In this document: positions 3,001-58,663 of the stretch, one piece after another
Numbering within the stretch: the first letter of the stretch is position 1
How the letters are laid out: every line of letters starts with the position of its first letter
Assembly: GCA_038496445.1 (NCBI GenBank)
Contig: JALMLS010000564.1
Span: forward strand, 248,001 to 312,000
Length of the DNA stretch: 64,000 nt
Direction of reading: 5' to 3'
DNA from: Trichosphaerium sp. ATCC 40318
Taxonomy: Eukaryota; Protista; Tubulinea
Position numbers and translations under genes: made by a program
The notes under the pieces: model-generated
Seen by the model: only the letters and a program-made list of their open reading frames with translations
Databases searched by the model: none
Told to the model about the DNA's origin: nothing

Positions 3001-4191
3001 CTCCATAAGTACGACACGTACGTCGTATGAATGGTATTCTACCTTACAGAAAGTGATAAAACTCGGTGCTAACCTCAGTGGTACGTAGTTCTTCTCTTTA
3101 TTAATACTAATTCATAACAGCTACTGATTCTCATGGAAACGGTCTTGTATCATTTCTACCTTCTATTTCTCATAGGCTACGAAGTTACAAGGACATAGAT
3201 AGGTCTCTTTTAGAACTACTGCGTACTTTTATGAGGATTGGATGTAATTGGAGGACACCCTGTGCATTTTTAGGCAATTCTACACCGTATGAGCTGGTAC
3301 GTTTATTATTCCCTTTTATGTCTATTTAAGTGCTTAATTTTGTTGTAGGCTTGTAGATATAGTAATTTAGAGATGGTAAAGCTCTTTTTAGCTGATGGTG
3401 CTGATCCTTCAAAGGTACCAATCGACTGACAATGTTTTTACTGATTTTTTTCTTTCAGATTGAGGTATCACCTGCTTGTGAGTTTAGAAACAAAGCATTT
3501 ATAGATTATGCTGCTTTATTAAAAGTACCTATTAAACATCCTGAGAAAGTACTTGGCATGGCATACAATGTCGTACGTAAATATAAAAAACTTGGTTCAT
3601 TCGGGTTTTTTTACTAATTGTTTCTCACAGGACTTTTTATTACACGTGCTAGACAAGTTCAACTTGAAACCTCATGTAAACTCTGTATGCCCTAAAACGG
3701 GTAACACTTGTTTGCACTATGCTGCACGATATTCAAATGATGCTGAAACAGTTGGTCATCTTATGTTACTTGGTACGATCAACACTTTATTTCTAATTTT
3801 TGGTTTGTCTGTACTCATTTTTTCTTTTTCTTTTTTAGGTGCCAAACAAGTACGTAATAAAGCTGGACAAACACCTGAAGAATATGTATTAAAATCAGGT
3901 GATGATCATAATAATATACGAGAAAAAAACTTAAGTAAGTCAACAATGAAGAGAAACGTTCAAGTTGTAATTCAAAAACGTGCCCTTTTGTTTGTTTTTT
4001 TTTTTTGTTCTCTTTCTACTCCTTCTCCTCTAACTTTTTATCTTCTACTTAGAGCACTTCTTCAATTCACAGCCATTTAAGGCACCCGATATGTACGAGT
4101 CAGAGTAACTTTTTTTTTGTTGCTTTTTAAACTATTGGTACTTATGAGTTTTTTAGGAATGTTGGACGTATTGGAAAGTTCACCATTCTGA
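1..4191 (+). CDS. Multi-exon scaffold protein (5' end outside window): Pro-rich region, filamin-type Ig fold, SAM, PH and ankyrin repeats
   Basis: Spliced exons give VRVVFTPPKEGSYSFNISV...IDGCPF (filamin Ig), WDIVRVCQWLLTINMEKYIPIFQREAITG...KWGHRNTIIHAIQNL (SAM), FYGWLK...KRWW...LMAKSEEEKQEWIAHI (PH), and GNTCLHYAA / NKAGQTP (ankyrin). Stop TGA at about 4189-4191. Confidence 0.8.
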
Positions 4192-4297
4192 AATAAGTCT
4201 TTTTTTGTCACATGTAAATTGTACATTACCACCACTGTTTATTATAAAATCACATTTTCACTTCAGAAAGCTGCTATTCATTGGAATAATTTGTGTT

Positions 4298-5091
4298 TTA
4301 ATATTGGTTTGTTAGTGTTCCAAATCTATAATCGTAGCGCGCAAGTTGGACTTGTGCCTTTGGTTTAGCCTTTGGTTTAACCTTTGGCGCTGGCTTTGGT
4401 TGTCTGGCTGGCTGCGGCTTCGGAAGGAGGTTTGCCATTTCAGGGATCTGGTAAAAGGTGCATTCTTCTAAGAGTCTCTCTCTGTTGTTCTCCATACACA
4501 CCACTTTACCTGTACGGAAGAATTCTAGTATATCGTAGAACGCATCACCATTCCTGTCGATAAACAGTTCGCCAGACTCGTCAAGAGTTTCTTGTAGATT
4601 CCATCTATCACTGAGCAACACATCGAAATACGGTGACTTACCCTTCAGAGTGGTTTTAGTAGTAAAGTACTTTACGCCACCAACGTTTAAGGTAATCCTA
4701 CTGCTTGTAGTGTCTTTGTACTGTTTCATTGCCGCTTCAAGCCTTTCTACCTCCTGTTGGATGTCGGCAAGCTTCTTTCTGCTTTAGATATCTTTTCTTT
4801 CTGTTCTTTGTCGTATTCATCGTGAAGCCATTTTATTTCTTGGATTGTTTTTTCTAGTTTCTCGTTTCTCTCTTTAGCAGCTTTTTCATCTTGTTTTTTC
4901 GTTTTTTCGATCCTCTCCCCAAGTTTGGCATTATCGGCAGCTAATTTAGCCTCCTTGTTGTCTAGCTCCTCTTTTAGACGATTAATCTCCTCTTCTCTTT
5001 GATCCAAGGACTGTTCTCTTCTATCCAGTTCTTTTTGTTTATTGACGAGCTCGTCTATAATATTAATACGACCATTGAGTATATCTGCCAT
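4298..5091 (-). CDS. Intronless coiled-coil + BTB/POZ (KCTD/T1-type) protein, split by one frameshift at about 4777
   Basis: ITLNVGGVKYFTTKTTL...FIDRNGDAFYDILEFFRTG is a KCTD-type BTB. The upstream coiled-coil ORF (4747-5091) joins it in frame if one A is added to GCAGAAAGAAG, giving AEKKLADIQQEVERLEAAMKQY. Confidence 0.8.
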
Positions 5092-7221: not shown

Positions 7222-8237
7222 TCAAGCGTGTTCATGAAACCTTGCTCTTTCTATTATAACACCACGACGAAATCGTACTTTATACTTCCAACCATTTGCT
7301 TCTGTTAAAATACCTCTCCCATGACATTCATGTCGACTATGCTGTCCTTGGTATTTTCTTCCATCTTCACCCCAATGAAAAGTACCTTCACCACTCATTA
7401 CATCATTTGTCCATTGTCCACGGTACATATTACCATTACCCCATCTCATTATTCCAAACCCTAACAGCAAAGTAAGATAATCAGAAAAAATGAAGAAAAA
7501 AGGATTCAAACAAACTGTACCATGCTTTTTACCATTATCAAATTCTCCAACATATTTTCTCGCCTTTGAAAGAGTCAAAACACCGTGCCCATGTGGCTTA
7601 TTATTGTGCCACTCGCCCTCATACCTTCTACCTCTTTTGATCATAGTAGCAACACCCATACCTTCAAGTTTATTGTCTTTCCAAGACCCGTAATATCGAT
7701 TTCCGTTCGGATATGTAGAAATACCAAATCCATTTTTTTTGCCATCTTCAACACTTCCAGTGTATATCTTTCCGTTAGGGAAACTCAGAGTTCCTTGTCC
7801 GGCGATTTTATTATTGGTGTACTCTCCGACATAACGGGAACCATCAGGCCACGTCATACTACCACGTTTCATCTCTCCATCCTCCCAAGTACCCCGGTAC
7901 CTAAAACAAACTTTTAACTACAAGGCTTGTCAAAGACAATAAAAAAAAACTGAACGTCTAGCACGCTCTTTCTAAAAACGACTAAAAAAGAAACTTGTGA
8001 GTCAATTTGGCGTATTTACTTTGTCCCATCTGGCCATTTAAATGATCCTCTTCCACTATAATTACCATTTGCACATTGCCCAATGTATAGTTTACCGTCT
8101 GGCCATCGCATTCTGACTGAATCAGAAACAGGAGCGTTAACATTACCATGACACTTAACACCATCAGAAAAAGTAATTTGTGGTGATCCAAGAACTCTTA
8201 AATGATCCCATAGCTCTGTAAAAAACCCTTGTGACAT
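7222..8237 (-). CDS. MORN-repeat protein
   Basis: Repeated GxGxxxWPDGxxYxGxWxxGxxxG units across 3 exons. Confidence 0.9.
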
Positions 8238-24298: not shown

Positions 24299-25596
24299 TT
24301 ATTTTTTTTTAAAGTACGTTTTGAAAGATGAAAAGTACTCAATATCATTTGTGGTTTGTGTAGGCGTTATGTCAGCGCTACAGTAAGCATGACCAAAATT
24401 TGGAATCCTGTTTTCAAAAAAAAGAAATCTGTCGTTGTGCACTATCAACGATACAAATACTATAGGTGCCATTAATTTGCGGTCAAGCACTAACTCAGGT
24501 ATCATGCAATGCTGTATAGAGTGAAGTGAATAGTATCGTTTATTTGAACTGTGGTTGAGTTAATACTCTGTATCACCATGTTGATAACAGCTACAGAAAA
24601 GGTCATTGTATCCATATTCTCTACGGTGAGGTGTATAATACACTAGCTGGCAATTTGGTCTTGTTCCAAAAGGTGGTAGAGGAAGTGATACAATACAACA
24701 AATACAAAATGAATGTTGTTGGCTTGACGGAGGTGTGGAAGTCGGAAATGTACCGTTCATTGCTGGAGGGAATGTGCCATTTGTAGATGGTGGAAAGGTG
24801 CCGTTTGTTGATGGTGGGAATGTGCCATTTGTAGATGGAGGAAATGTGCCGTTTGTTGATGGTGGAAAGGTACCGTTTGTAGAAGGTGGGAATGTGCCAT
24901 TGGTAGAAGGTGGGAATGTACCATTTGTAGAAGGTGGAAATGTGCCGTTTGTGGAAGGTGGGAATGTGCCATTTGTAGAAGGTGGGAATGTGCCGTTTGT
25001 AGAAGGTGGGAATGTGCCGTTTGTGGAAGGTGGAAATGTGCCGTTTGTTGATGGTGGAAATGTACCGTTTGTAGCTGGAGGAAAGGTACCGTTTGTAGAA
25101 GGTGGGAATGTGCCGTTTGTAGAAGGTGGGAATGTGCCGTTCATTGCTGGAGGGAAGGTGCCATTGGTGATGGTGGAAATGTGCCGTTTGTAGAAGGAGG
25201 GAATGTGCCATTCGTTGAAGGTGGGAAGGTACCGTTTGTAGAAGGAGGGAATGTGCCATTTGTTGATGGAGGAAAGGTACCGTTTGTAGAAGGTGGGGAT
25301 GTGCCATTTGTAGAAGGAGGGAATGTGCCATTCGTTGAAGGTGGGAAGGTGCCATTTGTAGATGGCGGGAATGTGCCATTTGTTGATGGAGGAGATGTGC
25401 CATTTGTTGATGGTGGAAAGGTTCCGTTTGTTGAAGGAGTAGTTCCGTTTGCTTGTACTTGAAAACTATCAGTTGTTGTCTCAATGTTTCCCTGAGAGCT
25501 TCTCAATGACCTGCGCTCACGCACGGATGAAACAGATAAAACCATTGCAGTCATGGATAAAAGTAAAACAGCAGCTATCACGTGTTTAAAAGGCAT
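24299..25596 (-). CDS. Secreted glycoprotein: signal peptide, about 30 x PPSTNGTF repeats, small Cys-containing C-terminal domain; one frameshift at about 25168
   Basis: N-terminal MPFKHVIAAVLLLSMTAMVLS and a basic RERR site. ORFs 25141-25596 and 24560-25144 carry the same repeat in different frames. C-terminal exons contain FCIC, PNC, FCSC and HAYC. Confidence 0.8.
24745..25455 (-). repeat. Coding 24-bp tandem repeat (PPSTNGTF), about 30 units
   Basis: The unit gtgccatttgtagaaggtgggaat and its synonymous variants are directly visible. Confidence 0.95.
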
Positions 25597-27999: not shown

Positions 28000-28802
28000 A
28001 TGTCTAACGTTACACATCACCCTGTAATTGAGGGTTTATTATACATGCGCGATTTTATAACTTCTACAGAAGAAAACACAATCCTAAAGAAGCTTGAAGA
28101 CATGGGATGGAGCGAAGAGCTGGAAAATGATCGCAGAGTACAACATTTTGGGTACAGATACGATTATCCTGTACGTTTGCGCGTTGTCAGTTAAAACAAA
28201 CTCAAACATGACCAATCGTAGTCTGAGTGCGTCGAAGCATTCACTGATGAACGTGCCACATTCCCTCCTTGCTTACAGAGTATTTTGGACAAAATTAAAA
28301 CATTAAACCTAATCAATAGACCAGACTACGTGTATGTAATGTATTGTAGCGTAAATGACACTTTTTAGGTTTAATCAGTCTATTTGTAATGATTACGGCC
28401 CAAGACATGGTATACGTTTCCATATGGACCGCATACATTGCTTCGGAAGTGTCATTCCATGTGTGTCACTTGTGGGCGACGGCGTGATAAACTTTCGAAA
28501 TAAAAAGACACAAGAGGTTATTCCTGTCACTGTGCATGCTAGATCGCTTTACATAATGACAGGTAAGTCAAGGTATGATTGGCAGCACGGCATAGAATAC
28601 GGTAAAGACGGTATGAGAAAATCTTGTAATACGCTATTTTTATCCGACTTCATTGATGTAATAATTAGATTCGAGACCTAGACGCGTATCAGTTACATTC
28701 AGAAAGATTACAAGCACGAAACCTCCTTCAAAAAAAAGAAAGGAAAAACGAGAAAAGAGGTGGGCTGAATTACAGGAGAATGAAGCGACAACCACGCAGT
28801 AA
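28000..28802 (+). CDS. AlkB-family 2OG-Fe(II) dioxygenase
   Basis: DFITSTEE, RRVQHFGYRYDY, NDYGPRHGIRFHMD (HxD), SLYIMTGKSRYDWQHGI (distal His), RRVSVTFRK. Confidence 0.92.
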
Positions 28803-30886: not shown

Positions 30887-31107
30887 TCGACAGCTTCTTT
30901 TCCAAATTGTTGTAAAATAAAAAAAAAAATCGTATCTTTTCGCTTTGTTGAAAGAAATTATTGGGATTTACCATCGGATTTCCGGAACTAGTCAAAATCT
31001 TAACTAATCAATCGCCGTGGAGTATAGGTATAATAAGAGGGTGAGAACGAAAAGTCCGGAATTTAGTCAAGTATTGTCTTGCTCATATTCAACTTCAGAG
31101 GTCAATA

Positions 31108-33309
31108 ATGCATCTGCTCCTATTGGCGTTCTGTGCTTTTGCCTTGTGCCTAGCCGCACCTGTGCCACCACCAACAGCTACTTATTACTACACTCAAACT
31201 TTGGATCATTTCAATTTCCTTACTGAGCCTCAAACGTTTCAACAACGCGTACTTGTTTACGATGCTGATTGGGATAAAGCTAACAACGGCAAGAACCTTC
31301 GATCGCTGTTTGACAACTGACACGCTCTATAGGCCCTGTTTTCTTCTACGCGGGTAATGAAGGCGATATTAGGAACTTTTACGACAATACTGGCTTCAGT
31401 ACGTATTTAACTTCCAATTATGCTCTAACAAGCGCAATAGTGTTCGATATTGCCCCAGAATTCGGTGCTTTGATTATCTTTGCCGAACATAGGTTTTATG
31501 GTAAGCTAACTTTTCTCACGAATACTCCGAAGCAAAAAACCTACTAACGAGCGATTTATAGGCCATACACAACCTTTTGGCAATAAATCCCACAGTGTAC
31601 CACAAATCGGCCTATTAAGCATCGAGCAGGCGCTTGCAGATTACGCTGAAATTATTCCAGCATACAAAAAACTGTTAGGAGCTGAAAACTCGAAAGTCAT
31701 CTCTTTTGGTGGTTCTTACGGTGGAATGTACGTAAAAGCGAACCTGCAAACTTATTAACTCCCACCGCTAGGTTAGCAGCCTACTTGCGCTTCAAATTCC
31801 CTCACATTGTTGACGGCGCACTTGCTGCTTCTGCACCAATCCGTTTGTTCTCAGGATACACAATGGCACCAGGATTTTACGAGACAGGTACAACTCAAAC
31901 GTTTTTTTGGACTGAAATTTCATGTTCATTTGTTGTTGGATTTATCTGTTTTATTTTTTTTTGGGTTTTAACCTGTCTTTATAGTATCAACTGTATTCGC
32001 AAGACGTAATCCAGAATGTACCGACAACGTTAAAGAAGGTTTCGCTGAATTTCTCAAACTTGCAGCTCAAGGACCAGCTGGTAAAGTTCTTTTTGGAAAA
32101 ATATCATCGTGTTAATTGTTTTTTTTCCTGTTTAGGCTGGAAGACATTGACTGATACACTCCGCGTTTGCCGTCCAATTACATCACAACATGATGTAGCA
32201 CACGTGCTAGCATGGCTAGTCAACTCCTATGCTAACATGGCTATGGCAAATTACCCGTAAGTTTATTGTAGTATTTAAGTATCGACTCAAACTCGGCATA
32301 GATACCCAGCTAACTTCCTTGGAAACTTGCCAGCATGGCCTTTGGACTATTCTTGTACTTTAACAAAGGGTAAAGCACCTCTTGAGGGTCTACGTGACTC
32401 TGCCGGTTTGTTTTGTACGTAGCCTGAAAATGTTATTTTTTCGATTTTCGTAATTTGACAATCCGTTGACCCTTTCATCAAGATAACGGTACAAATGGTG
32501 CTCTTAAATGTTACGATACTATCTCTGAATATATTGAATGCTCTGATCAAACTGGGTACGACAAATTGGTTTTTTTTTTGTTCAACAGCCAGAAGACTGA
32601 TAAAACTTAAAATAGATGTGGTGAGGGCCCTGATGGACACTCTTGGGATTACCAAGCATGTACCGAAATCATTGCACTTATTAGCACAAACAATGTTACT
32701 GATATGTTCCCTCCACATGACTGGACACTTGCTGACCTCCAAGCCCACTGTAAAACCAAGTAAGTGACAACTTTATGTTCCTTTTTTGGATGTAAATTAA
32801 CGAATATCTTTTAGCTGGGGTGTAGCTCCTAGACCAGGTTGGATGGGTACTAACTTTGGTGGACCAATGTTTAAAGGTGGTAGTAACATCATTTTCTCTA
32901 ATGGTCTTCTTGACCCTTGGCATGGAGGTACGTTTAACTTTTTTTGTAGATTTGAACTTCCATTTCGAAAATGAATTATTTTCGTTCGAACTTACATGCT
33001 TATTTCCTTTCCAGGTGGTTTCTTGAAACAACTATCACCAACTATGCCAGCTGTACTTATTAAGGATGGCGCTCACCACTTGGATTTGAGGTACGCGTGT
33101 GATACATACATGAACTCAATTTTTTCTGGTTTTTTCAAATAACAAAACCGATTGCTAATTAATTTGTTTTTAGATCAAGCAATCCTTTGGATCCACAATC
33201 TGTTATTACCGCAAGAAACACTGAAAAGCAATGGATTAAGAAATTTTTAGAAGAAAAGGCTCCAGATATGTTCGAAGGCACTGATCAAACAACAATTTAC
33301 ACTAATTAA
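31108..33309 (+). CDS. PRCP: Lysosomal Pro-X carboxypeptidase / DPP-II (peptidase S28)
   Basis: Signal peptide, [40 protein letters not shown] (catalytic Ser), [20 protein letters not shown]. Confidence 0.93.
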
Positions 33310-33598
33310 AAACAAAGACTTTCTTCAAAACTTGAAAAAAACGAATAATAAACGTTAAATTTTTTCAATTAATGTCATCTGTTTACAAACAATACTTTCG
33401 CAATTTGTGCAAATAAAACCATCCATTACGTTTTATGGGTTTATACGTCCAAGAAGAATTGTCTTGTGTTTGGGTGACTTAGCGCACTTCGTATCACAGG
33501 AACTTAGCGGTTCGTGTCATAGGAACTTGCGGTTGCTAGTTCCTAATGAATACAGTTCCTACATTCATTATTCTCAAGCATACAACAAAGCAAGTCAA

Positions 33599-34162
33599 AT
33601 GGCAGAACGTTTACCAACCGGATGGGAACCTATTTACAACAAATCTAAAGAGAAAATAGGATACAAAGATGCAAACAACGTTTTCCAAACAGAGCTGCCA
33701 AAAACCACATCGTCTGAATCGAGTACAGGATTTTTTGTTCCTGTAGGATCAATAATAGCATACCATAGCGCATTAATGGGCTCAAACGCGCCTCTACCTT
33801 GTAATTACGCTGCTTGTGACGGTCAGGTCGTTACAGATCCTCAAAGTCCACTGTGTGGCAAAACGCTACCAAATCTAAACGGCGAACGTGGTCACTTCCT
33901 TAGAGGAGGTAAAATGAGCGGTGTATTTCAAGAGGATGCATTTCAGGGACATGGTCACCTGTTTGTATCAAGAGGTGATTCTGCACCTTCTCCAGGAGGC
34001 CATAAAACTGACGCTGCTAATCACAGTGGAACATCAGGGGAGTATAGATCAACTGGGAAGGTTCGAAATGCAATAAAGTTTGACAATTGCGGAGATCCTA
34101 GGGTAGCCGAAGAAACGAGACCAATGAACATGAGTGTAACATGGATAATAAGGATAAAATAA
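33599..34162 (+). CDS. Intronless protein: degenerate WW-like N-terminus fused to a phage tail-collar domain
   Basis: LPTGWEPIYNKSKEKIGY...QTELP (WW-like), then VPVGSIIAY...CDGQ...LPNLNG...FLRGG...QEDAFQGHGH...ETRPMNMSVTWIIRIK (tail-collar/short-tail-fibre signature). 187 aa from the ATG at 33599. Confidence 0.85.
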   Translation: MAERLPTGWEPIYNKSKEKIGYKDANNVFQTELPKTTSSESSTGFFVPVGSIIAYHSALMGSNAPLPCNYAACDGQVVTDPQSPLCGKTLPNLNGERGHFLRGGKMSGVFQEDAFQGHGHLFVSRGDSAPSPGGHKTDAANHSGTSGEYRSTGKVRNAIKFDNCGDPRVAEETRPMNMSVTWIIRIK

Positions 34163-34337
34163 ACGCTACACAAATTGTTAGTTCTCGAATATCTTTGCAT
34201 TCTTGTATATACTAGGTTAGAGCGCACAGCTAACGCCATCTGGCAAAGGAAAGTTCATAAAGCACCATAAGGCCACTAATTAGCGGACAAACTATGACCA
34301 TAACTCCTTTTTTGTTAATTATTGAGTAAAACACCAC

Positions 34338-44657: not shown

Positions 44658-47600
44658 TTAAACAATATTAGGTGAACCTCTGCTTGTCAGAGGTTGTTCT
44701 TCAGGTGATGTTTCATTACCAGGTTGAGCTTCTTCGCTGCTAAGACATTCAGAACAGATTAGTTCATCGTTGACTTTAGATAACTTGCTACGACGCAATT
44801 TCTTTGAACACTTCTTGCACTTTCTTCTTCTTAAACAACCAGCAAATATCCAACAGCAACAAGCAGATGTTACTATTAAAGCGGCAATACCACCGCCAGC
44901 GCCAAGTGTTGGAATTAACCATGGCTTACGCTCGCCTTGAGATCCTTGATTGATAACAGATTCACCGTTTCTATCTCCTAGAAGAGATGGCGTTGTAGGA
45001 GCCGTAGTTGGTCCTTCTGTTGTTCCAGTTGCTGTTTCGATTGTTGGGGCTGTAGTTGGCCTCATTGTAGGTGGAGTAGAAGGAATAAAAGTTGGTGATT
45101 CACTCGTTGGTGTTGCCATTGGAGTCTGTGTTGTAGGATGTATTGTTGTTGGATGAGGTGTCCTTGGAGACCTAGTAGTTGGTGGCATTGTTGTTGGAGG
45201 AGCTATTGTTGGATGAGCCGTTGTTGGTGCTACGGTTGGTGCCTTTGTTGTTGGACTTTCTGTTGTTGGGTGTTGTGTTGTAGGCGCTATGGTGGTTGGT
45301 GACAAACTTGTTGGAGGTTCAGTTGTAGGATGCGCTGTTGTTGGATGAGCTGTCGTTGGAGACATCGTAGTTGGTGGTATTGTTGTTTGGGGAGCTGTTG
45401 TAGGATGGAGAGTAGTTGGCGGCAATGTTGTAGGAGGAAGTGTAGTTGGAGCCTCCGTTGTTGGACTTTCTGTTGTTGGAGCGTCTGTTGTTGGAGATAA
45501 TGTAGTCGGTGGCTGTGTTGTAGGTGGCATTGTGGTTGGTGGTACCGTTGTTGGATGAAGCGTTGTAGGCGCCTCAGTTGTAGGTGCTTCTGTAGAAGGC
45601 GCCTCAGTTGTTGGATTCGCCGTCGTTGGATGTGAAGTTGTTGGTGATATTGTCGTTGGAGGTACAGTAGTTGGCGGTAGTGTTGTAGGAGGAGCTGTAG
45701 TTGGTGGCATTGTCGTAGGAGGTTCAGTAGTTGGAGGTAACGTTGTAGGTGGTAGTGTTGTTGGAGGCAACGTTGTAGGAGGAGCTGTTGTAGGGGGCAA
45801 TGTTGTTGGAGGTTCTGTTGTTGGACTTTCAGTTGTTGGCGCTTCATTTGTTGGAGCGTCTGTTGTTGGAGCCTTTGTTGTTGGAGATAATGTAGTCGGT
45901 GGCTGTGTTGTAGGTGGCATTGTGGTCGGTGGAATAGTTGTAGGCGGCAACGTTGTTGGAGCGTTTGTTGTTGGCGCTTCAGTTGTTGGTGGCCTTGTCG
46001 TTGGAGCTAGCGTAGACGGAGGCTCTGTAGTTGGGGCTGCAGTTGTAGGAGGGAGAGTAGTAGGCGGCAATGTCGTTGGAGGAAGCGTTGTTGGAGGAAG
46101 TGTTGTTGGCGGCAATGTCGTCGGAGGTTCAGTAGTTGGCGGTAGTGTTGTAGGAGGAGCTGTAGTTGGTGGCAACGTCGTTGGAGGTTCAGTAGTTGGC
46201 GGCAATGTTGTAGGAGGAGCTGTAGTTGGAAGCAACGTTGTTGGAGGGAGTGTGGTTGGAGGTAATGTTGTAGGAGGAAGCGTTGTTGGAGGGAGTGTGG
46301 TTGGTGCCAACGTAGTTGGTGGGAGTGTAGTTGGTGGCAACGTTGTAGGAGGAAACGTTGTAGGTGGTAGTGTTGTTGGAGGCAACGTTGTAGGAGGTGC
46401 TGTTGTAGGGGCCAATGTTGTTGGAGGTTCCGTTGTTGGTGGCAATGTCGTTGGTGGCATTGTTGTTGGAGGAAGTGTTGTTGGTGGCAATGTCGTTGGA
46501 GGTTCAGTAGTTGGCGACAATGTTGTAGGAGGAGCTGTAGTTGGAGGCAACATTGTTGGAGGAAGTGTTGTTGGAGGCAATGTCGTTGGAGGAAGCGTTG
46601 TTGGAGGAAGTGTCGTTGGCGGCACTGTAGTAGGTGGTTCAGTTGTTGGCGGCAATGTAGTTGGAGGTAACGTTGTAGGAGGTATTGTCGTTGGAGGCAA
46701 CGTGGTTGGTGATAGCGTCGTAGGTGGTAAGGTAGTTGGGGGAAGTGTGGTAGGAGGACTAGGCACTACACATTCATCGTTGGTCATTGAGAACTCGTCT
46801 TTCTACAGCGTAGTTAGAATATTTGTTATGCAAAACAGTAACGACGTACAATATCGACAGTCATCACTGTATCTTTTTGTCCATCTACAACGTTGAATAC
46901 ACTAACGCCTTCAGCGCCTGTTGCTGCACTTATATCTATAGAGAATGCCCGTGAATTTTGTGGAAAAGGACCTAGCACAACACCGTCCATCCATTTCTAC
47001 AAAGATCTTTAGTTAGAACAAAGCAGTTGTTGTTTAGCGTACTTTAGACCACGCAAAGTTACATTCAAAGGTGTTTGTAGCAGCATCATAAGTATATTTT
47101 TCATTTGGATCGTCTACCATGACGACCTAAGGAGGTATAAGCAAAATATAAAATGGAAAAAAGAAAGAAAAAAGAAAGGTACTTACTTTAACGCCTGGTA
47201 TTGGTGGGTTGACCTGAACCTTTATCTTTACTTTTCCTCCTGTTGTATCAGAAAACCCAGCTGTTTGTGGAGCATCGAGCATTAAAATAAGATGGTAACC
47301 GTCCTGTTGCGACTGTTAGTTTGGAACCAAGAAAAAAAGCGAAGTCAAAGACGTACTGCTGCAAGAAGCCAAAAAGCGCCAACATTATCTTGTATCGCCT
47401 CAAGGTCTTCAAAACCATCTGGAGTATCAGCAATTGGTCCAGAATTTCCTCTTTTATATCCGTAATAGTCTTCTGCTGTTAAGGTTGATGTATATGGTGT
47501 TAATGGTGCAACTTGACCTGTGTAACGTAAGTGATACTATTTTCTGAAAACCATAAAATTCTAGAAGTGCCGTTTGGTTATTTTTTGCAATTACATTAAA

Positions 47601-56419: not shown

Positions 56420-57006
56420 TTACTTTTTTCGGTAACTTTCCCATTTTTCTTTTGACATGTGATATGTTGCTAATGGGTTATCTTCACTATCATTACAATA
56501 TACAACTTCAAGGCCAAGAGTTTTTTCACAGTAACCACGCATACCCTTATTATATTTACTTGTACGCCAACTTGCACTTTTCATCCTTTTTTTCACAAAG
56601 CATACATCAAAAACTGCATCATGGATTTCCTTGCAATACCCTTTCCCCCAGTGGTCTTTATGAAGGATAATACCAAGTTCAGCATCTCTTGTAACCATAT
56701 TTGCTCTAACCCAGCCACCTACGCCAATAAATTGATCATTTAGAAGAATATAGACCACATAAGCTGATCCTCCTTTCTGACGTAAACTTTGATCTTTTCT
56801 CCTTGCTATTATCTCCTTTCGTGTCCATTTCCTGTGTAGCATTTGTAAGTGTGCCATGGTATCATCGTGCGCAAATAAATCAGCCATTGCGGCATCGTGA
56901 GCGCCGCCTTGATACAATTTAAATGTTAACAACAAAGTGCTTCACAAACCGCACCCACGCTCGCTGCGTCTATCAAAGTTAACCTTTCTGTATGAAGTGC
57001 CGCCAT
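56420..57006 (-). CDS. GNAT (RimJ/RimL-type) acetyltransferase, 2 exons
   Basis: MAALHTERLTL; FIGVGG; AELGIILHKDHWGKGY (acetyl-CoA motif A); NKGMRGYCEKTLG. Confidence 0.88.
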
Positions 57007-57247: not shown

Positions 57248-58663
57248 TTATGGCCACATTATTGCAGAGTTTACGTTATGCTTTTCGTGACAGATACTCT
57301 GTAGTGCTTCAATACCTGCGTATGTAACATGTTTACATCCTTGCAAGTTTATAGTGTGAGCACCAGCTAAAGCTAAAACTCCTTCATCTGTTATACCTTT
57401 ACATGCAGTCAAAGTAATCATATGAACGTCAACTAAAGCTTTAATACCATCACCAGTAACCTTAGTGTATCCAAGATCTATTGTGTGAACACCAACTAAA
57501 GCTCTAACTCCTTTATCTGTTATACCTCCACACTTACTCAAGTTAATGGTGTGAATGCCAGCTAAAGCCTTAATACCATCATCTGTGACCTTTGTGTATG
57601 CGAGATCTATTGTATGAACTCCAGCCAATGCTTTGATGCCTTTGTCAGTTACCTCAGTTTTTCTCAAATTAATAGTATGAACACCAACTAAAGCTTTAAC
57701 ACCTTCATCTGTAACTGTAGTGTATTGAAGATCTATGTTATGAACACCAGCCAATGCTTTAACTCCTTCATCTGTCACTACTGTTCCGTCAAGCTTAATT
57801 GTGTGAACACCAACTAAAGCTTTAACTCCATCATCAGTTACGTTTGTACATCCAAGGCTAATAGTATGAACACCAGCCAATGCTTTAACACCTTCATCTG
57901 TGATTTGCTCACACAGAAGTAAATCTATTGTGTGTACACCAGCCAACGCCTTGATGCCCTCATCTGTTATGCCACAAGAACGTAGACTTATCTTATGCAC
58001 ACCAGCCAACGCCTTAATGCCCTCATCTGTAAATGTACAGCCGAGATTATGCAGCTTGATAGTGTGTACACCTGACAACGCTTTGAGACCGTCATCTGTA
58101 ACTTCTATACCAGTAAGATCAATAGCATGAACACCAGCTAACGCCTTAATACCTTCAGCTGTCACTTGCCTACAATGTAGTAAATTTATTGTATGTACGC
58201 CAGCCAAAGCTTTGAGGCCATTGGTTGTTATAACGCAGCCATTGAGTAGTATAATAGGTACGCCAGCAAGTCGTTGTAGTTGCCTATCAGTAAATGTATA
58301 GTTGCAAAAGGCAACTCTGTGAACATTCTTGAATTTCTTAAATGTAAGTGTTCCAATTTGTCTAAAATCGACAGAGTATGCTCCATTGAGATACTTTAAA
58401 TGTTGTTGTTTGATTGGGTACTGTATTACAATGTTGTTCGATTTAATAATATGTGGTGCTTTTTTAAATAGCTTCCGTAGAGTCTTCACGTTTTTTATGG
58501 TGATATTCATGTCGTTTACATAGCCCAAGTGTTTAAGCGCTATTTTCTCAAACAACTTCGAAGTGCGTACTACTGAACGCATAGTTAAAGCTGAAACAAA
58601 CTGAAAGATTACAACAATGATTTCAATCGGCATCGTATCAAAGAATGCAATTTGTTGGTCCAT
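57248..58663 (-). CDS. Intronless F-box + leucine-rich repeat protein (about 13 x TDEGVKALAGVHTIDL units)
   Basis: N-terminal FDTMPIEIIVVIFQFV...VVRTSKLFEKI (F-box); 24-26 aa LRRs; single 471-aa ORF. Confidence 0.9.
   Translation of the reverse strand: MDQQIAFFDTMPIEIIVVIFQFVSALTMRSVVRTSKLFEKIALKHLGYVNDMNITIKNVKTLRKLFKKAPHIIKSNNIVIQYPIKQQHLKYLNGAYSVDFRQIGTLTFKKFKNVHRVAFCNYTFTDRQLQRLAGVPIILLNGCVITTNGLKALAGVHTINLLHCRQVTAEGIKALAGVHAIDLTGIEVTDDGLKALSGVHTIKLHNLGCTFTDEGIKALAGVHKISLRSCGITDEGIKALAGVHTIDLLLCEQITDEGVKALAGVHTISLGCTNVTDDGVKALVGVHTIKLDGTVVTDEGVKALAGVHNIDLQYTTVTDEGVKALVGVHTINLRKTEVTDKGIKALAGVHTIDLAYTKVTDDGIKALAGIHTINLSKCGGITDKGVRALVGVHTIDLGYTKVTGDGIKALVDVHMITLTACKGITDEGVLALAGAHTINLQGCKHVTYAGIEALQSICHEKHNVNSAIMWP

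Follow-up and report, generated by a model that had tools for sequence, protein, structure and literature searches.

A transcribed single-exon gene of the amoeba Trichosphaerium encodes a phage-type tail-collar module with a conserved tip and a possible WW-like leader

We analysed a 64,000-nucleotide stretch of the genome of the amoeba Trichosphaerium sp. ATCC 40318 (contig JALMLS010000564.1, assembly GCA_038496445.1; the window) and found that a 187-codon frame on its plus strand, from an ATG at 33599 to a TAA at 34160-34162, is a genuine, transcribed, single-exon gene of the amoeba, hereafter the collar gene. Sequence comparisons make it secure that residues 46-187 of the product are homologous to the collar and receptor-binding tip of phage short tail fibres. 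One stretch of this tip, which we call the frozen tip, is by codon comparison under purifying selection in a small sub-clade of relatives that includes a protein of the kinetoplastid Neobodo designis. The first residues probably form a mini-domain resembling a WW domain. An earlier reading of the letters alone (the original prediction) had described a phage tail-collar domain fused to a WW-like module; the novelty lies in three features, namely the sub-clade with a frozen tip and no signal peptides, the shortened collar that Pfam fails to recognise, and the leader resembling a WW domain. The product is laid out as follows.

33599..34162, plus strand: coding sequence, 187 amino acids plus stop (read as an open reading frame, ORF; host-like GC content and GC content at third codon positions, GC3)
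33611..33700, plus strand: putative WW-like mini-domain, residues 5-34 (LPTGWE ... P34), from PDB sequence matches and the model of the isolated leader
33701..33733, plus strand: Ser/Thr-rich linker, residues 35-45, from sequence and a low predicted local distance difference test score (pLDDT)
33734..33907, plus strand: shortened collar domain, residues 46-103, by alignment to the tail fibre of Acinetobacter phage BS46
33908..34159, plus strand: gp12-like short-tail-fibre receptor-binding domain, residues 104-187, from its alignment with the PF14928 region in the BS46 fibre
33950..33958, plus strand: HxH motif, H118-G-H120, aligned with the metal-binding HxH of T4 gp12
33959..34048, plus strand: frozen tip, residues 121-150 (LFVSRGDSAPSPGGHKTDAANHSGTSGEYR), by conservation within the sub-clade
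34112..34129, plus strand: ETRPMN, a C-terminal family motif conserved among 98 members

The frame is not a chance ORF, since a relative matches its product at E 2e-44. It is present in a single copy in the window (tblastn of the window). A 649-nt contig of sequencing run X1 is colinear over its full length with 33529-34176, and the collar gene is therefore intronless. This confirms the intronless 187-residue ORF of the original prediction, both in the frame read from the window and in the unspliced cDNA contig. All sequencing runs found were derived from spliced RNA, and X1 can be identified as cDNA because it shows the SMART template-switch oligo as a loose end together with all 12 splice joints of the adjoining peptidase gene. 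The collar contig is distinct from the peptidase contig in X1, with zero coverage between the two. A poly(A) signal lies 13 nt before the end of the collar contig, comparable to the ATTAAA found 10 bases before the end of the peptidase transcript, and this indicates that the collar gene uses eukaryotic 3'-end signals. X1 and the window differ at three positions within the peptidase mRNA, so X1 represents another strain. The transcript and the upstream flank comprise the following features.

33529..34176, plus strand: transcribed unit, unspliced (run X1, record 2; 649-nt cDNA contig, depth 50)
33546..33659, plus strand: out-of-frame ATG opening a 37-codon upstream ORF across the main start codon (from sequence; inside the cDNA contig)
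33946..33948, plus strand: GGG run with one extra G in the X1 contig (X1 cDNA versus window)
34158..34163, plus strand: AATAAA poly(A) signal overlapping the stop codon, before the cDNA contig end at 34176
31091..33319, plus strand: S28 serine carboxypeptidase (PRCP-like) gene forming the upstream flank (spliced contigs, four runs)

The peptidase gene places the collar gene in a eukaryotic setting. Its spliced coding sequence, rebuilt at 1464 nt, gives a product of 486 amino acids with a signal peptide, and one of its exons matches Pfam Peptidase_S28. The 12 introns are short (42-97 nt) and of the GT..AG type, and four runs show identical splicing. Although the first joint was listed as GG..TA, three bases fit either side of it, and the cut could lie up to 3 bases further on. 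The collar ORF begins 280 bases after the end of the peptidase transcript. At the intron density of this neighbour, the probability of finding no intron in 564 nt is ~0.01. The composition of the collar coding sequence is host-like (GC 0.431 and GC3 0.298, compared with 0.433 and 0.347 for the peptidase). The flanks of the collar gene contain no direct or inverted repeats and thus show no sign of a mobile element or a retrocopy.

All the collar signature motifs listed in the original prediction are present: PVGSIIAY (48-55), CDGQ (73-76), LPNLNGERGHFLRG (90-103), which is longer than the pattern given there, QEDAFQGHGH (111-120) and ETRPMNMSVTWIIRIK (172-187). The collar assignment rests on PHROG hidden Markov models (HMMs), a family profile and fold comparison. 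Two PHROG models named 'tail collar fiber protein' match the amoeba protein directly (phrog_1800, E 4.4e-8; phrog_523, E 6.2e-8); matches to models of this name and to 'tail fiber protein' models span E 4e-8 to 1e-4 and sit at the C-terminal ends of the fibre profiles. Consistent with this, tblastn returned tail fibre and tail-collar proteins from phages of Yersinia, Acinetobacter, Rhizobium and Achromobacter (E 1e-7 to 7e-3). The BS46 fibre aligns to residues 46-187 at a pairwise E of 3e-12, and its aligned region carries Pfam Collar (its residues 226-283) followed by PF14928.

A family profile built from 98 members finds 9CUY (7e-15) and T4 gp12 (1OCY, 5IV5 and 1PDI; 3e-11 to 3e-10) in the PDB, and it aligns H118-G-H120 and ETRPMN with the gp12-type chains. 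Among these 98 members E172 is invariant, T173, R174, P175 and N177 are nearly so, and His118 and His120 are nearly invariant as well. In T4 gp12, the histidines of the HxH motif bind metal and the module is a homotrimer. Structure prediction was carried out on a single chain; in the AlphaFold2 (AF2) model the collar is predicted with confidence (pLDDT 80-97) and the remainder with moderate scores. Foldseek placed T4 gp12 first among the matches of this model (probability 0.87-0.90, E 6e-3). In an exhaustive VIA-align comparison with 48,161 chains, all 10 matches with Z>=2 were fibre or baseplate proteins of phages or extracellular contractile injection systems. The best of them, 1OCY, reached Z 5.7 (below 8) at a root-mean-square deviation (rmsd) of 2.0 Å over 61 residues, with a monomeric model of a fold that is expected to be an intertwined trimer.

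The original prediction had named HMMER searches against Pfam Collar (PF07484) and WW (PF00397) as its check and the lack of a collar hit as grounds for rejecting it. Neither profile matched at E<=10, and taken literally this outcome goes against it, as does the lack of any match to S_tail_recep_bd (PF14928) or NCBIfam models on the amoeba protein at the same cut-off. The collar identity nevertheless holds through the searches described above. Compared with the BS46 fibre, the collar of the amoeba protein has a gap of ~12 residues in the canonical middle segment (Y..LF..IG..YG.GDG.TTF.LPDLRG), which explains why Pfam misses it. The Pfam Collar gathering threshold is 24 bits; the close relative P0001 scores 20.3 bits, below this cut-off, and the Neobodo protein P0002 scores 70.4 bits. 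Pfam Collar is present in 67 of the 98 aligned relatives. Collars shortened in this way are also seen in bacterial tandem proteins and in one phage tail fibre, L008.

To place the module among its relatives, we used an exhaustive profile search, which returned 10,515 related proteins at E<=1e-3. The near relatives inspected in this wide family are bacterial or phage proteins. Bacterial relatives have signal peptides and tandem modules and include very large proteins on Mb-scale contigs; metagenome-assembled genomes with relatives belong to Phycisphaerae, Saprospiraceae and Desulfovibrio, and a GTDB scan confirmed only four loci. The phage relative L008, 42% identical to the amoeba protein, is a tail fibre whose gene lies in a baseplate cluster. 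The sub-clade comprises the amoeba protein, P0001 (59% identity; Logan contig L001), P0012 (from a 1-kb AT-rich metagenome contig) and P0002 (a Neobodo designis transcript, UniRef A0A7S1MFL1, 'Phage tail collar domain-containing protein'). The amoeba protein, P0001 and P0012 group with 97% support in the Shimodaira-Hasegawa-like approximate likelihood-ratio test (SH-aLRT), and a tree holding all four together lies 51.6 log-likelihood units above the free search (approximately unbiased test, p 0.94). Beside the gene for P0001, contig L001 carries, at 1868-2833 and 3683-4450, a piggyBac-type DDE transposase ORF (Pfam E 1.5e-27) and, by eye, fragments of a Kelch-repeat gene on the opposite strand. 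This content argues for a eukaryotic host of P0001. Like the collar gene, those for P0001 and P0012 lack introns in their contigs.

No hydrophobic N-terminal segment was found in the amoeba protein, in agreement with the lack of a signal peptide stated in the original prediction, nor in the other three sub-clade members, whereas bacterial relatives have signal peptides. The N-termini of the other members are unrelated to that of the amoeba protein; in P0001 and P0012 the stretch before the collar resembles, by eye, a short coiled coil. Among the bacterial relatives, P0004-P0007 and P0008-P0013 carry 2-3 tandem short-collar plus receptor-binding modules, some in proteins of 1200-2000 residues on Mb-scale contigs, an architecture unlike that of single-tip phage fibres. 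No frozen-tip member of the sub-clade was found in IMG/VR, and a metagenome scan yielded no further frozen-tip member.

In tail fibres, the stretch after HxH is the variable receptor-binding head, and few protein surfaces are known to evolve as fast as the receptor-binding tips of phages. In the four-member sub-clade, residues 121-150 are the best-conserved part of the protein, with 79% mean pairwise identity compared with 49% for the collar; across the wide family, identity to the amoeba protein over these residues is 11%. Between the amoeba protein and P0001, 30 of 34 tip residues are identical, and 16 of the codons for those residues differ. Identity of residues despite differing codons indicates purifying selection on the protein rather than recent DNA exchange. 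A fixed tip, in turn, would imply a fixed ligand.

The sequence relationships support horizontal acquisition of the collar module from bacteria or phages as the simplest origin, the direction of transfer being inferred from the bacterial and phage distribution of the wide family. The original prediction of a horizontally acquired bacterial or phage module is upheld to this extent; since the sub-clade includes a kinetoplastid transcript, the gene is not a lone recent capture. In the phylogeny suggested at the time, the sub-clade itself is supported, and deeper forks have support under 80. Given these forks and a protein library without taxon names, no donor can be named.

Several known systems help to define the protein. 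T4 gp12 (PF07484 plus PF14928; PDB 1OCY, 5IV5 and 9CUY) shares with it a collar followed by a receptor-binding domain, the aligned HxH and the C-terminal strand ETRPxN...I(I/K). Unlike gp12, the amoeba protein is encoded in a eukaryote, has no fibre shaft, has a collar ~12 residues shorter, carries the WW-like leader and has a conserved rather than a variable tip. Short-collar phage fibres (L008 from IMG/VR; PHROG 1800 and 523) resemble it in the end motifs and in 42% identity over module residues 7-146, but there the module forms the tip of fibres of 300-670 residues, encoded in baseplate clusters, and the tip sequence is different. Bacterial collar proteins (P0014, P0018, P0023 and P0004-P0007, one of them named 'microcystin-dependent protein' at its source) contain single or tandem units of collar plus receptor-binding domain of ~140 residues that are 40-47% identical, but they bear signal peptides or bacterial N-terminal modules and do not have the frozen tip. 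The other sub-clade members share with the amoeba protein a near-identical tip, the lack of a signal peptide, small size, the intronless state and 50-62% module identity; Neobodo P0002 differs in that it keeps the long canonical collar. Collar modules are also auto-annotated in protist transcriptomes (UniRef). Viruses of eukaryotes carry such modules too, in the virophage and giant-virus collar proteins OLV18, OLV19 and OLPV (PMC3671162, PMC10385804); these are likened here by description rather than by sequence, and they differ from the sub-clade insofar as IMG/VR yielded no frozen-tip member.

Presence of the same N-terminal leader in bacterial homologs would, by its own terms, have spoken against the original prediction. 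None of the relatives examined carries the leader, searching by words with residues 1-46 gave no candidate, and it does not align to the N-terminus of P0001. A phmmer search of the leader against all PDB sequences gave 21 weak matches (E 0.36-1.1), all of them WW domains (Pin1 variants and Su(dx)). These matches are in register, with LPxGWE, Tyr22 and Pro34 kept and a spacing of 25 residues from the first Trp to the Pro; W9, Y22 and P34 align with Pin1 W11, Y24 and P37. When the leader was modelled by AF2 as an isolated 46-residue chain, the best model had strands at 10-13, 19-23 and 29-30 with a pLDDT of ~90 for residues 11-30. Foldseek of this model returned almost exclusively WW domains among the top ~50 matches, with template modelling (TM) scores of 0.5-0.67 and an rmsd of ~2 Å. 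We put the chance that the leader has a WW-like fold at about two in three.

WW domains hold proline ligands through a strand-2 Tyr and a second Trp. In the leader, the second-Trp position is Thr31 and the binding-Tyr position is Gly21, the conserved WW Asn is not aligned, and of the two signature Trp 20-22 residues apart the leader has the first, W9. The leader thus compares with WW domains (PF00397, e.g., Pin1) in its LPxGWE start, its strand-2 Tyr and, in the best isolated model, a predicted three-stranded sheet, and differs from them in both binding positions and in having no HMM match. If WW-like, it is by its sequence without the classical proline-binding face. The WW resemblance lacking the second Trp that had been claimed originally is therefore retained in its motif and spacing, with Trp replaced by Thr31, and is weak as a sequence match. 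The similarity between 'LP.GWE' of the leader and 'LP.GW.EC.G' of collars raised the alternative that the leader is a degenerate second collar; the collar-module HMM gave -0.4 bits, inside the range of 1000 shuffles, and this candidate was rejected.

Our favoured explanation combines these elements, and we regard it as more likely than not. The protein would consist of three parts, a WW-like leader of ~30 residues, a Ser/Thr-rich linker and a gp12-type collar plus receptor-binding module that was transferred horizontally from bacteria or phages. By analogy with gp12, it would form a homotrimer held by metal on H118/H120 and present its conserved tip as a binding surface to one fixed ligand inside the cell; for this intracellular-homotrimer mechanism our confidence is moderate. 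The leader would have been added in the amoeba lineage, keeping the fold-forming core of a WW domain while losing the proline-binding face, and its role would more likely be that of a small cap for structure or docking than that of a classical PPxY reader. The cytosolic adaptor of the original prediction, for example one that senses bacterial surfaces, is a conjecture that the analysis does not support.

Several observations weigh against this explanation, and many of them favour a plainer one, to which we give roughly half as much credence: a small transferred collar protein like bacterial MdpB or a phage fibre tip, in which the first 45 residues are mostly disordered and the WW resemblance is due to chance. 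Pfam WW fails to match whether the whole protein or residues 1-46 are searched, all WW E-values exceed 0.3, and the PDB matches come from essentially two independent proteins. Of the five single-sequence models of the leader, only one is confident and four are weak, and in the full-length model residues 1-45 come out as coil (pLDDT 50-61). An Atlas shape search with the leader model returned no WW families, and an Atlas feature search with residues 1-46 gave chance-level scores (0.77-0.83) to collar-type clusters and none to WW. AF2 may simply recall the WW fold from the LPxGWE motif. The missing binding residues and the unrelated N-termini within the sub-clade point the same way. Against chance stands the uniformity of the signal: every weak sequence match and nearly all of the top 50 structural matches are WW domains and in register, the motif residues are kept with exact Trp-to-Pro spacing, and the best isolated model is predicted with high confidence. 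Other points count against the favoured explanation as a whole, namely the low support for forks below the sub-clade and the lack of a taxon label for two of its members, P0001 and P0012.

A further alternative raised by the transcript data is that the amoeba transcribes what is left of a transferred gene, decaying or dispensable and of little or no use to it. The extra G in X1, which may reflect a genuine null allele in another strain or else an error in the contig, would by computation end the protein at 125 amino acids, before HxH. The 5' untranslated region contains the out-of-frame ATG at 33546. Beyond X1, two bulk runs hold only fragments of 140-155 nt (X5, 33765-33919; X6, 33809-33948), a fourth run, X8, contained no collar-gene sequence, and an exact look-up in the public collection found no gene record with the product of the collar ORF. 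All of this again speaks against a functional protein. However, the frame in the window is intact over 187 codons with every nearly invariant family residue kept, the tip has remained almost identical to that of P0001 despite synonymous divergence, the poly(A) signal is well placed and the codon composition is host-like, and we consider a remnant unlikely.

Improbable, in our view, is a processed (retro) copy of an intron-bearing collar gene as opposed to a separate acquisition. The intronless state in an intron-dense setting would fit such a copy; there is no poly(A) tract remnant and no flanking direct repeat, and the nearest relatives, P0001 and P0012, are intronless too. Bacterial or phage contamination, or a chimeric assembly join, has next to nothing left to commend it. 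The family is overwhelmingly prokaryotic, and the reads found are all RNA, none bridging the flanks as DNA, so that linkage of the ORF to the 12-intron gene on the same contig is assembly-based. Yet the ORF lies a few hundred bases from that spliced gene inside a 64-kb eukaryotic window, its GC and GC3 are like those of the host, its closest kin are non-bacterial, and its transcript occurs in cDNA libraries of the organism with a eukaryotic poly(A) signal at the cDNA end.

The window contains further genes with conspicuous features. At 24560-25596 on the minus strand, a long tandem array of the 8-residue unit NGTFPPST follows a signal-peptide-like start, with strong GC skew; from its sequence, the product looks like a secreted or surface repeat protein. 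A 709-codon ORF at 44658-46787 (minus strand) encodes TTLPP-type mucin-like repeats and a terminal transmembrane stretch with a tail rich in Cys and in Lys/Arg. The plus-strand segment 54440-55354 has a very long loop rich in His-Gly and His-Asp (HGHGHG... KDDHHEDHGHGHG) within a piece of Pfam Cation_efflux (E 6e-7) and is probably an exon of a CDF/ZnT-type metal transporter. A single-exon gene at 57248-58663 (minus strand) encodes 471 amino acids, with a start that looks F-box-like by eye and with numerous LRR_6 repeats (Pfam E 3e-37); an exact look-up in the public collection found no gene record for this product. The minus strand also encodes a MORN-repeat protein (7222-7872, E 1e-34) and a GNAT acetyltransferase (56420-56935, E 2e-14), and 28355-28678 on the plus strand is an exon of a 2-oxoglutarate- and Fe(II)-dependent (2OG-Fe(II)) oxygenase of an AlkB-like Pfam family (E 5e-8).

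Gene transfers from bacteria and phages into bacterivorous amoebae are common, and the collar gene, as it stands, adds one well-documented case to them. What may reach further is the frozen tip, which is fixed in at least two distant protist groups without a secretion signal and thereby implies a new constant target inside eukaryotic cells. A bolder proposal, which we rate as a long shot, is that the frozen-tip sub-clade represents a eukaryotic, intracellular, trimeric pattern-recognition receptor of phage origin, common to amoebae, kinetoplastids and other protists. Its tip would read one conserved microbial or cellular ligand, possibly a sugar of the bacterial envelope that becomes exposed in the cytosol when a phagosome is damaged, and the WW-like leader of the amoeba copy would couple it to host proteins. 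The amoeba copy may also exemplify the grafting of a eukaryotic mini-domain onto a module gained by transfer. If found, the ligand would show the re-use by eukaryotes of a viral device for host recognition.

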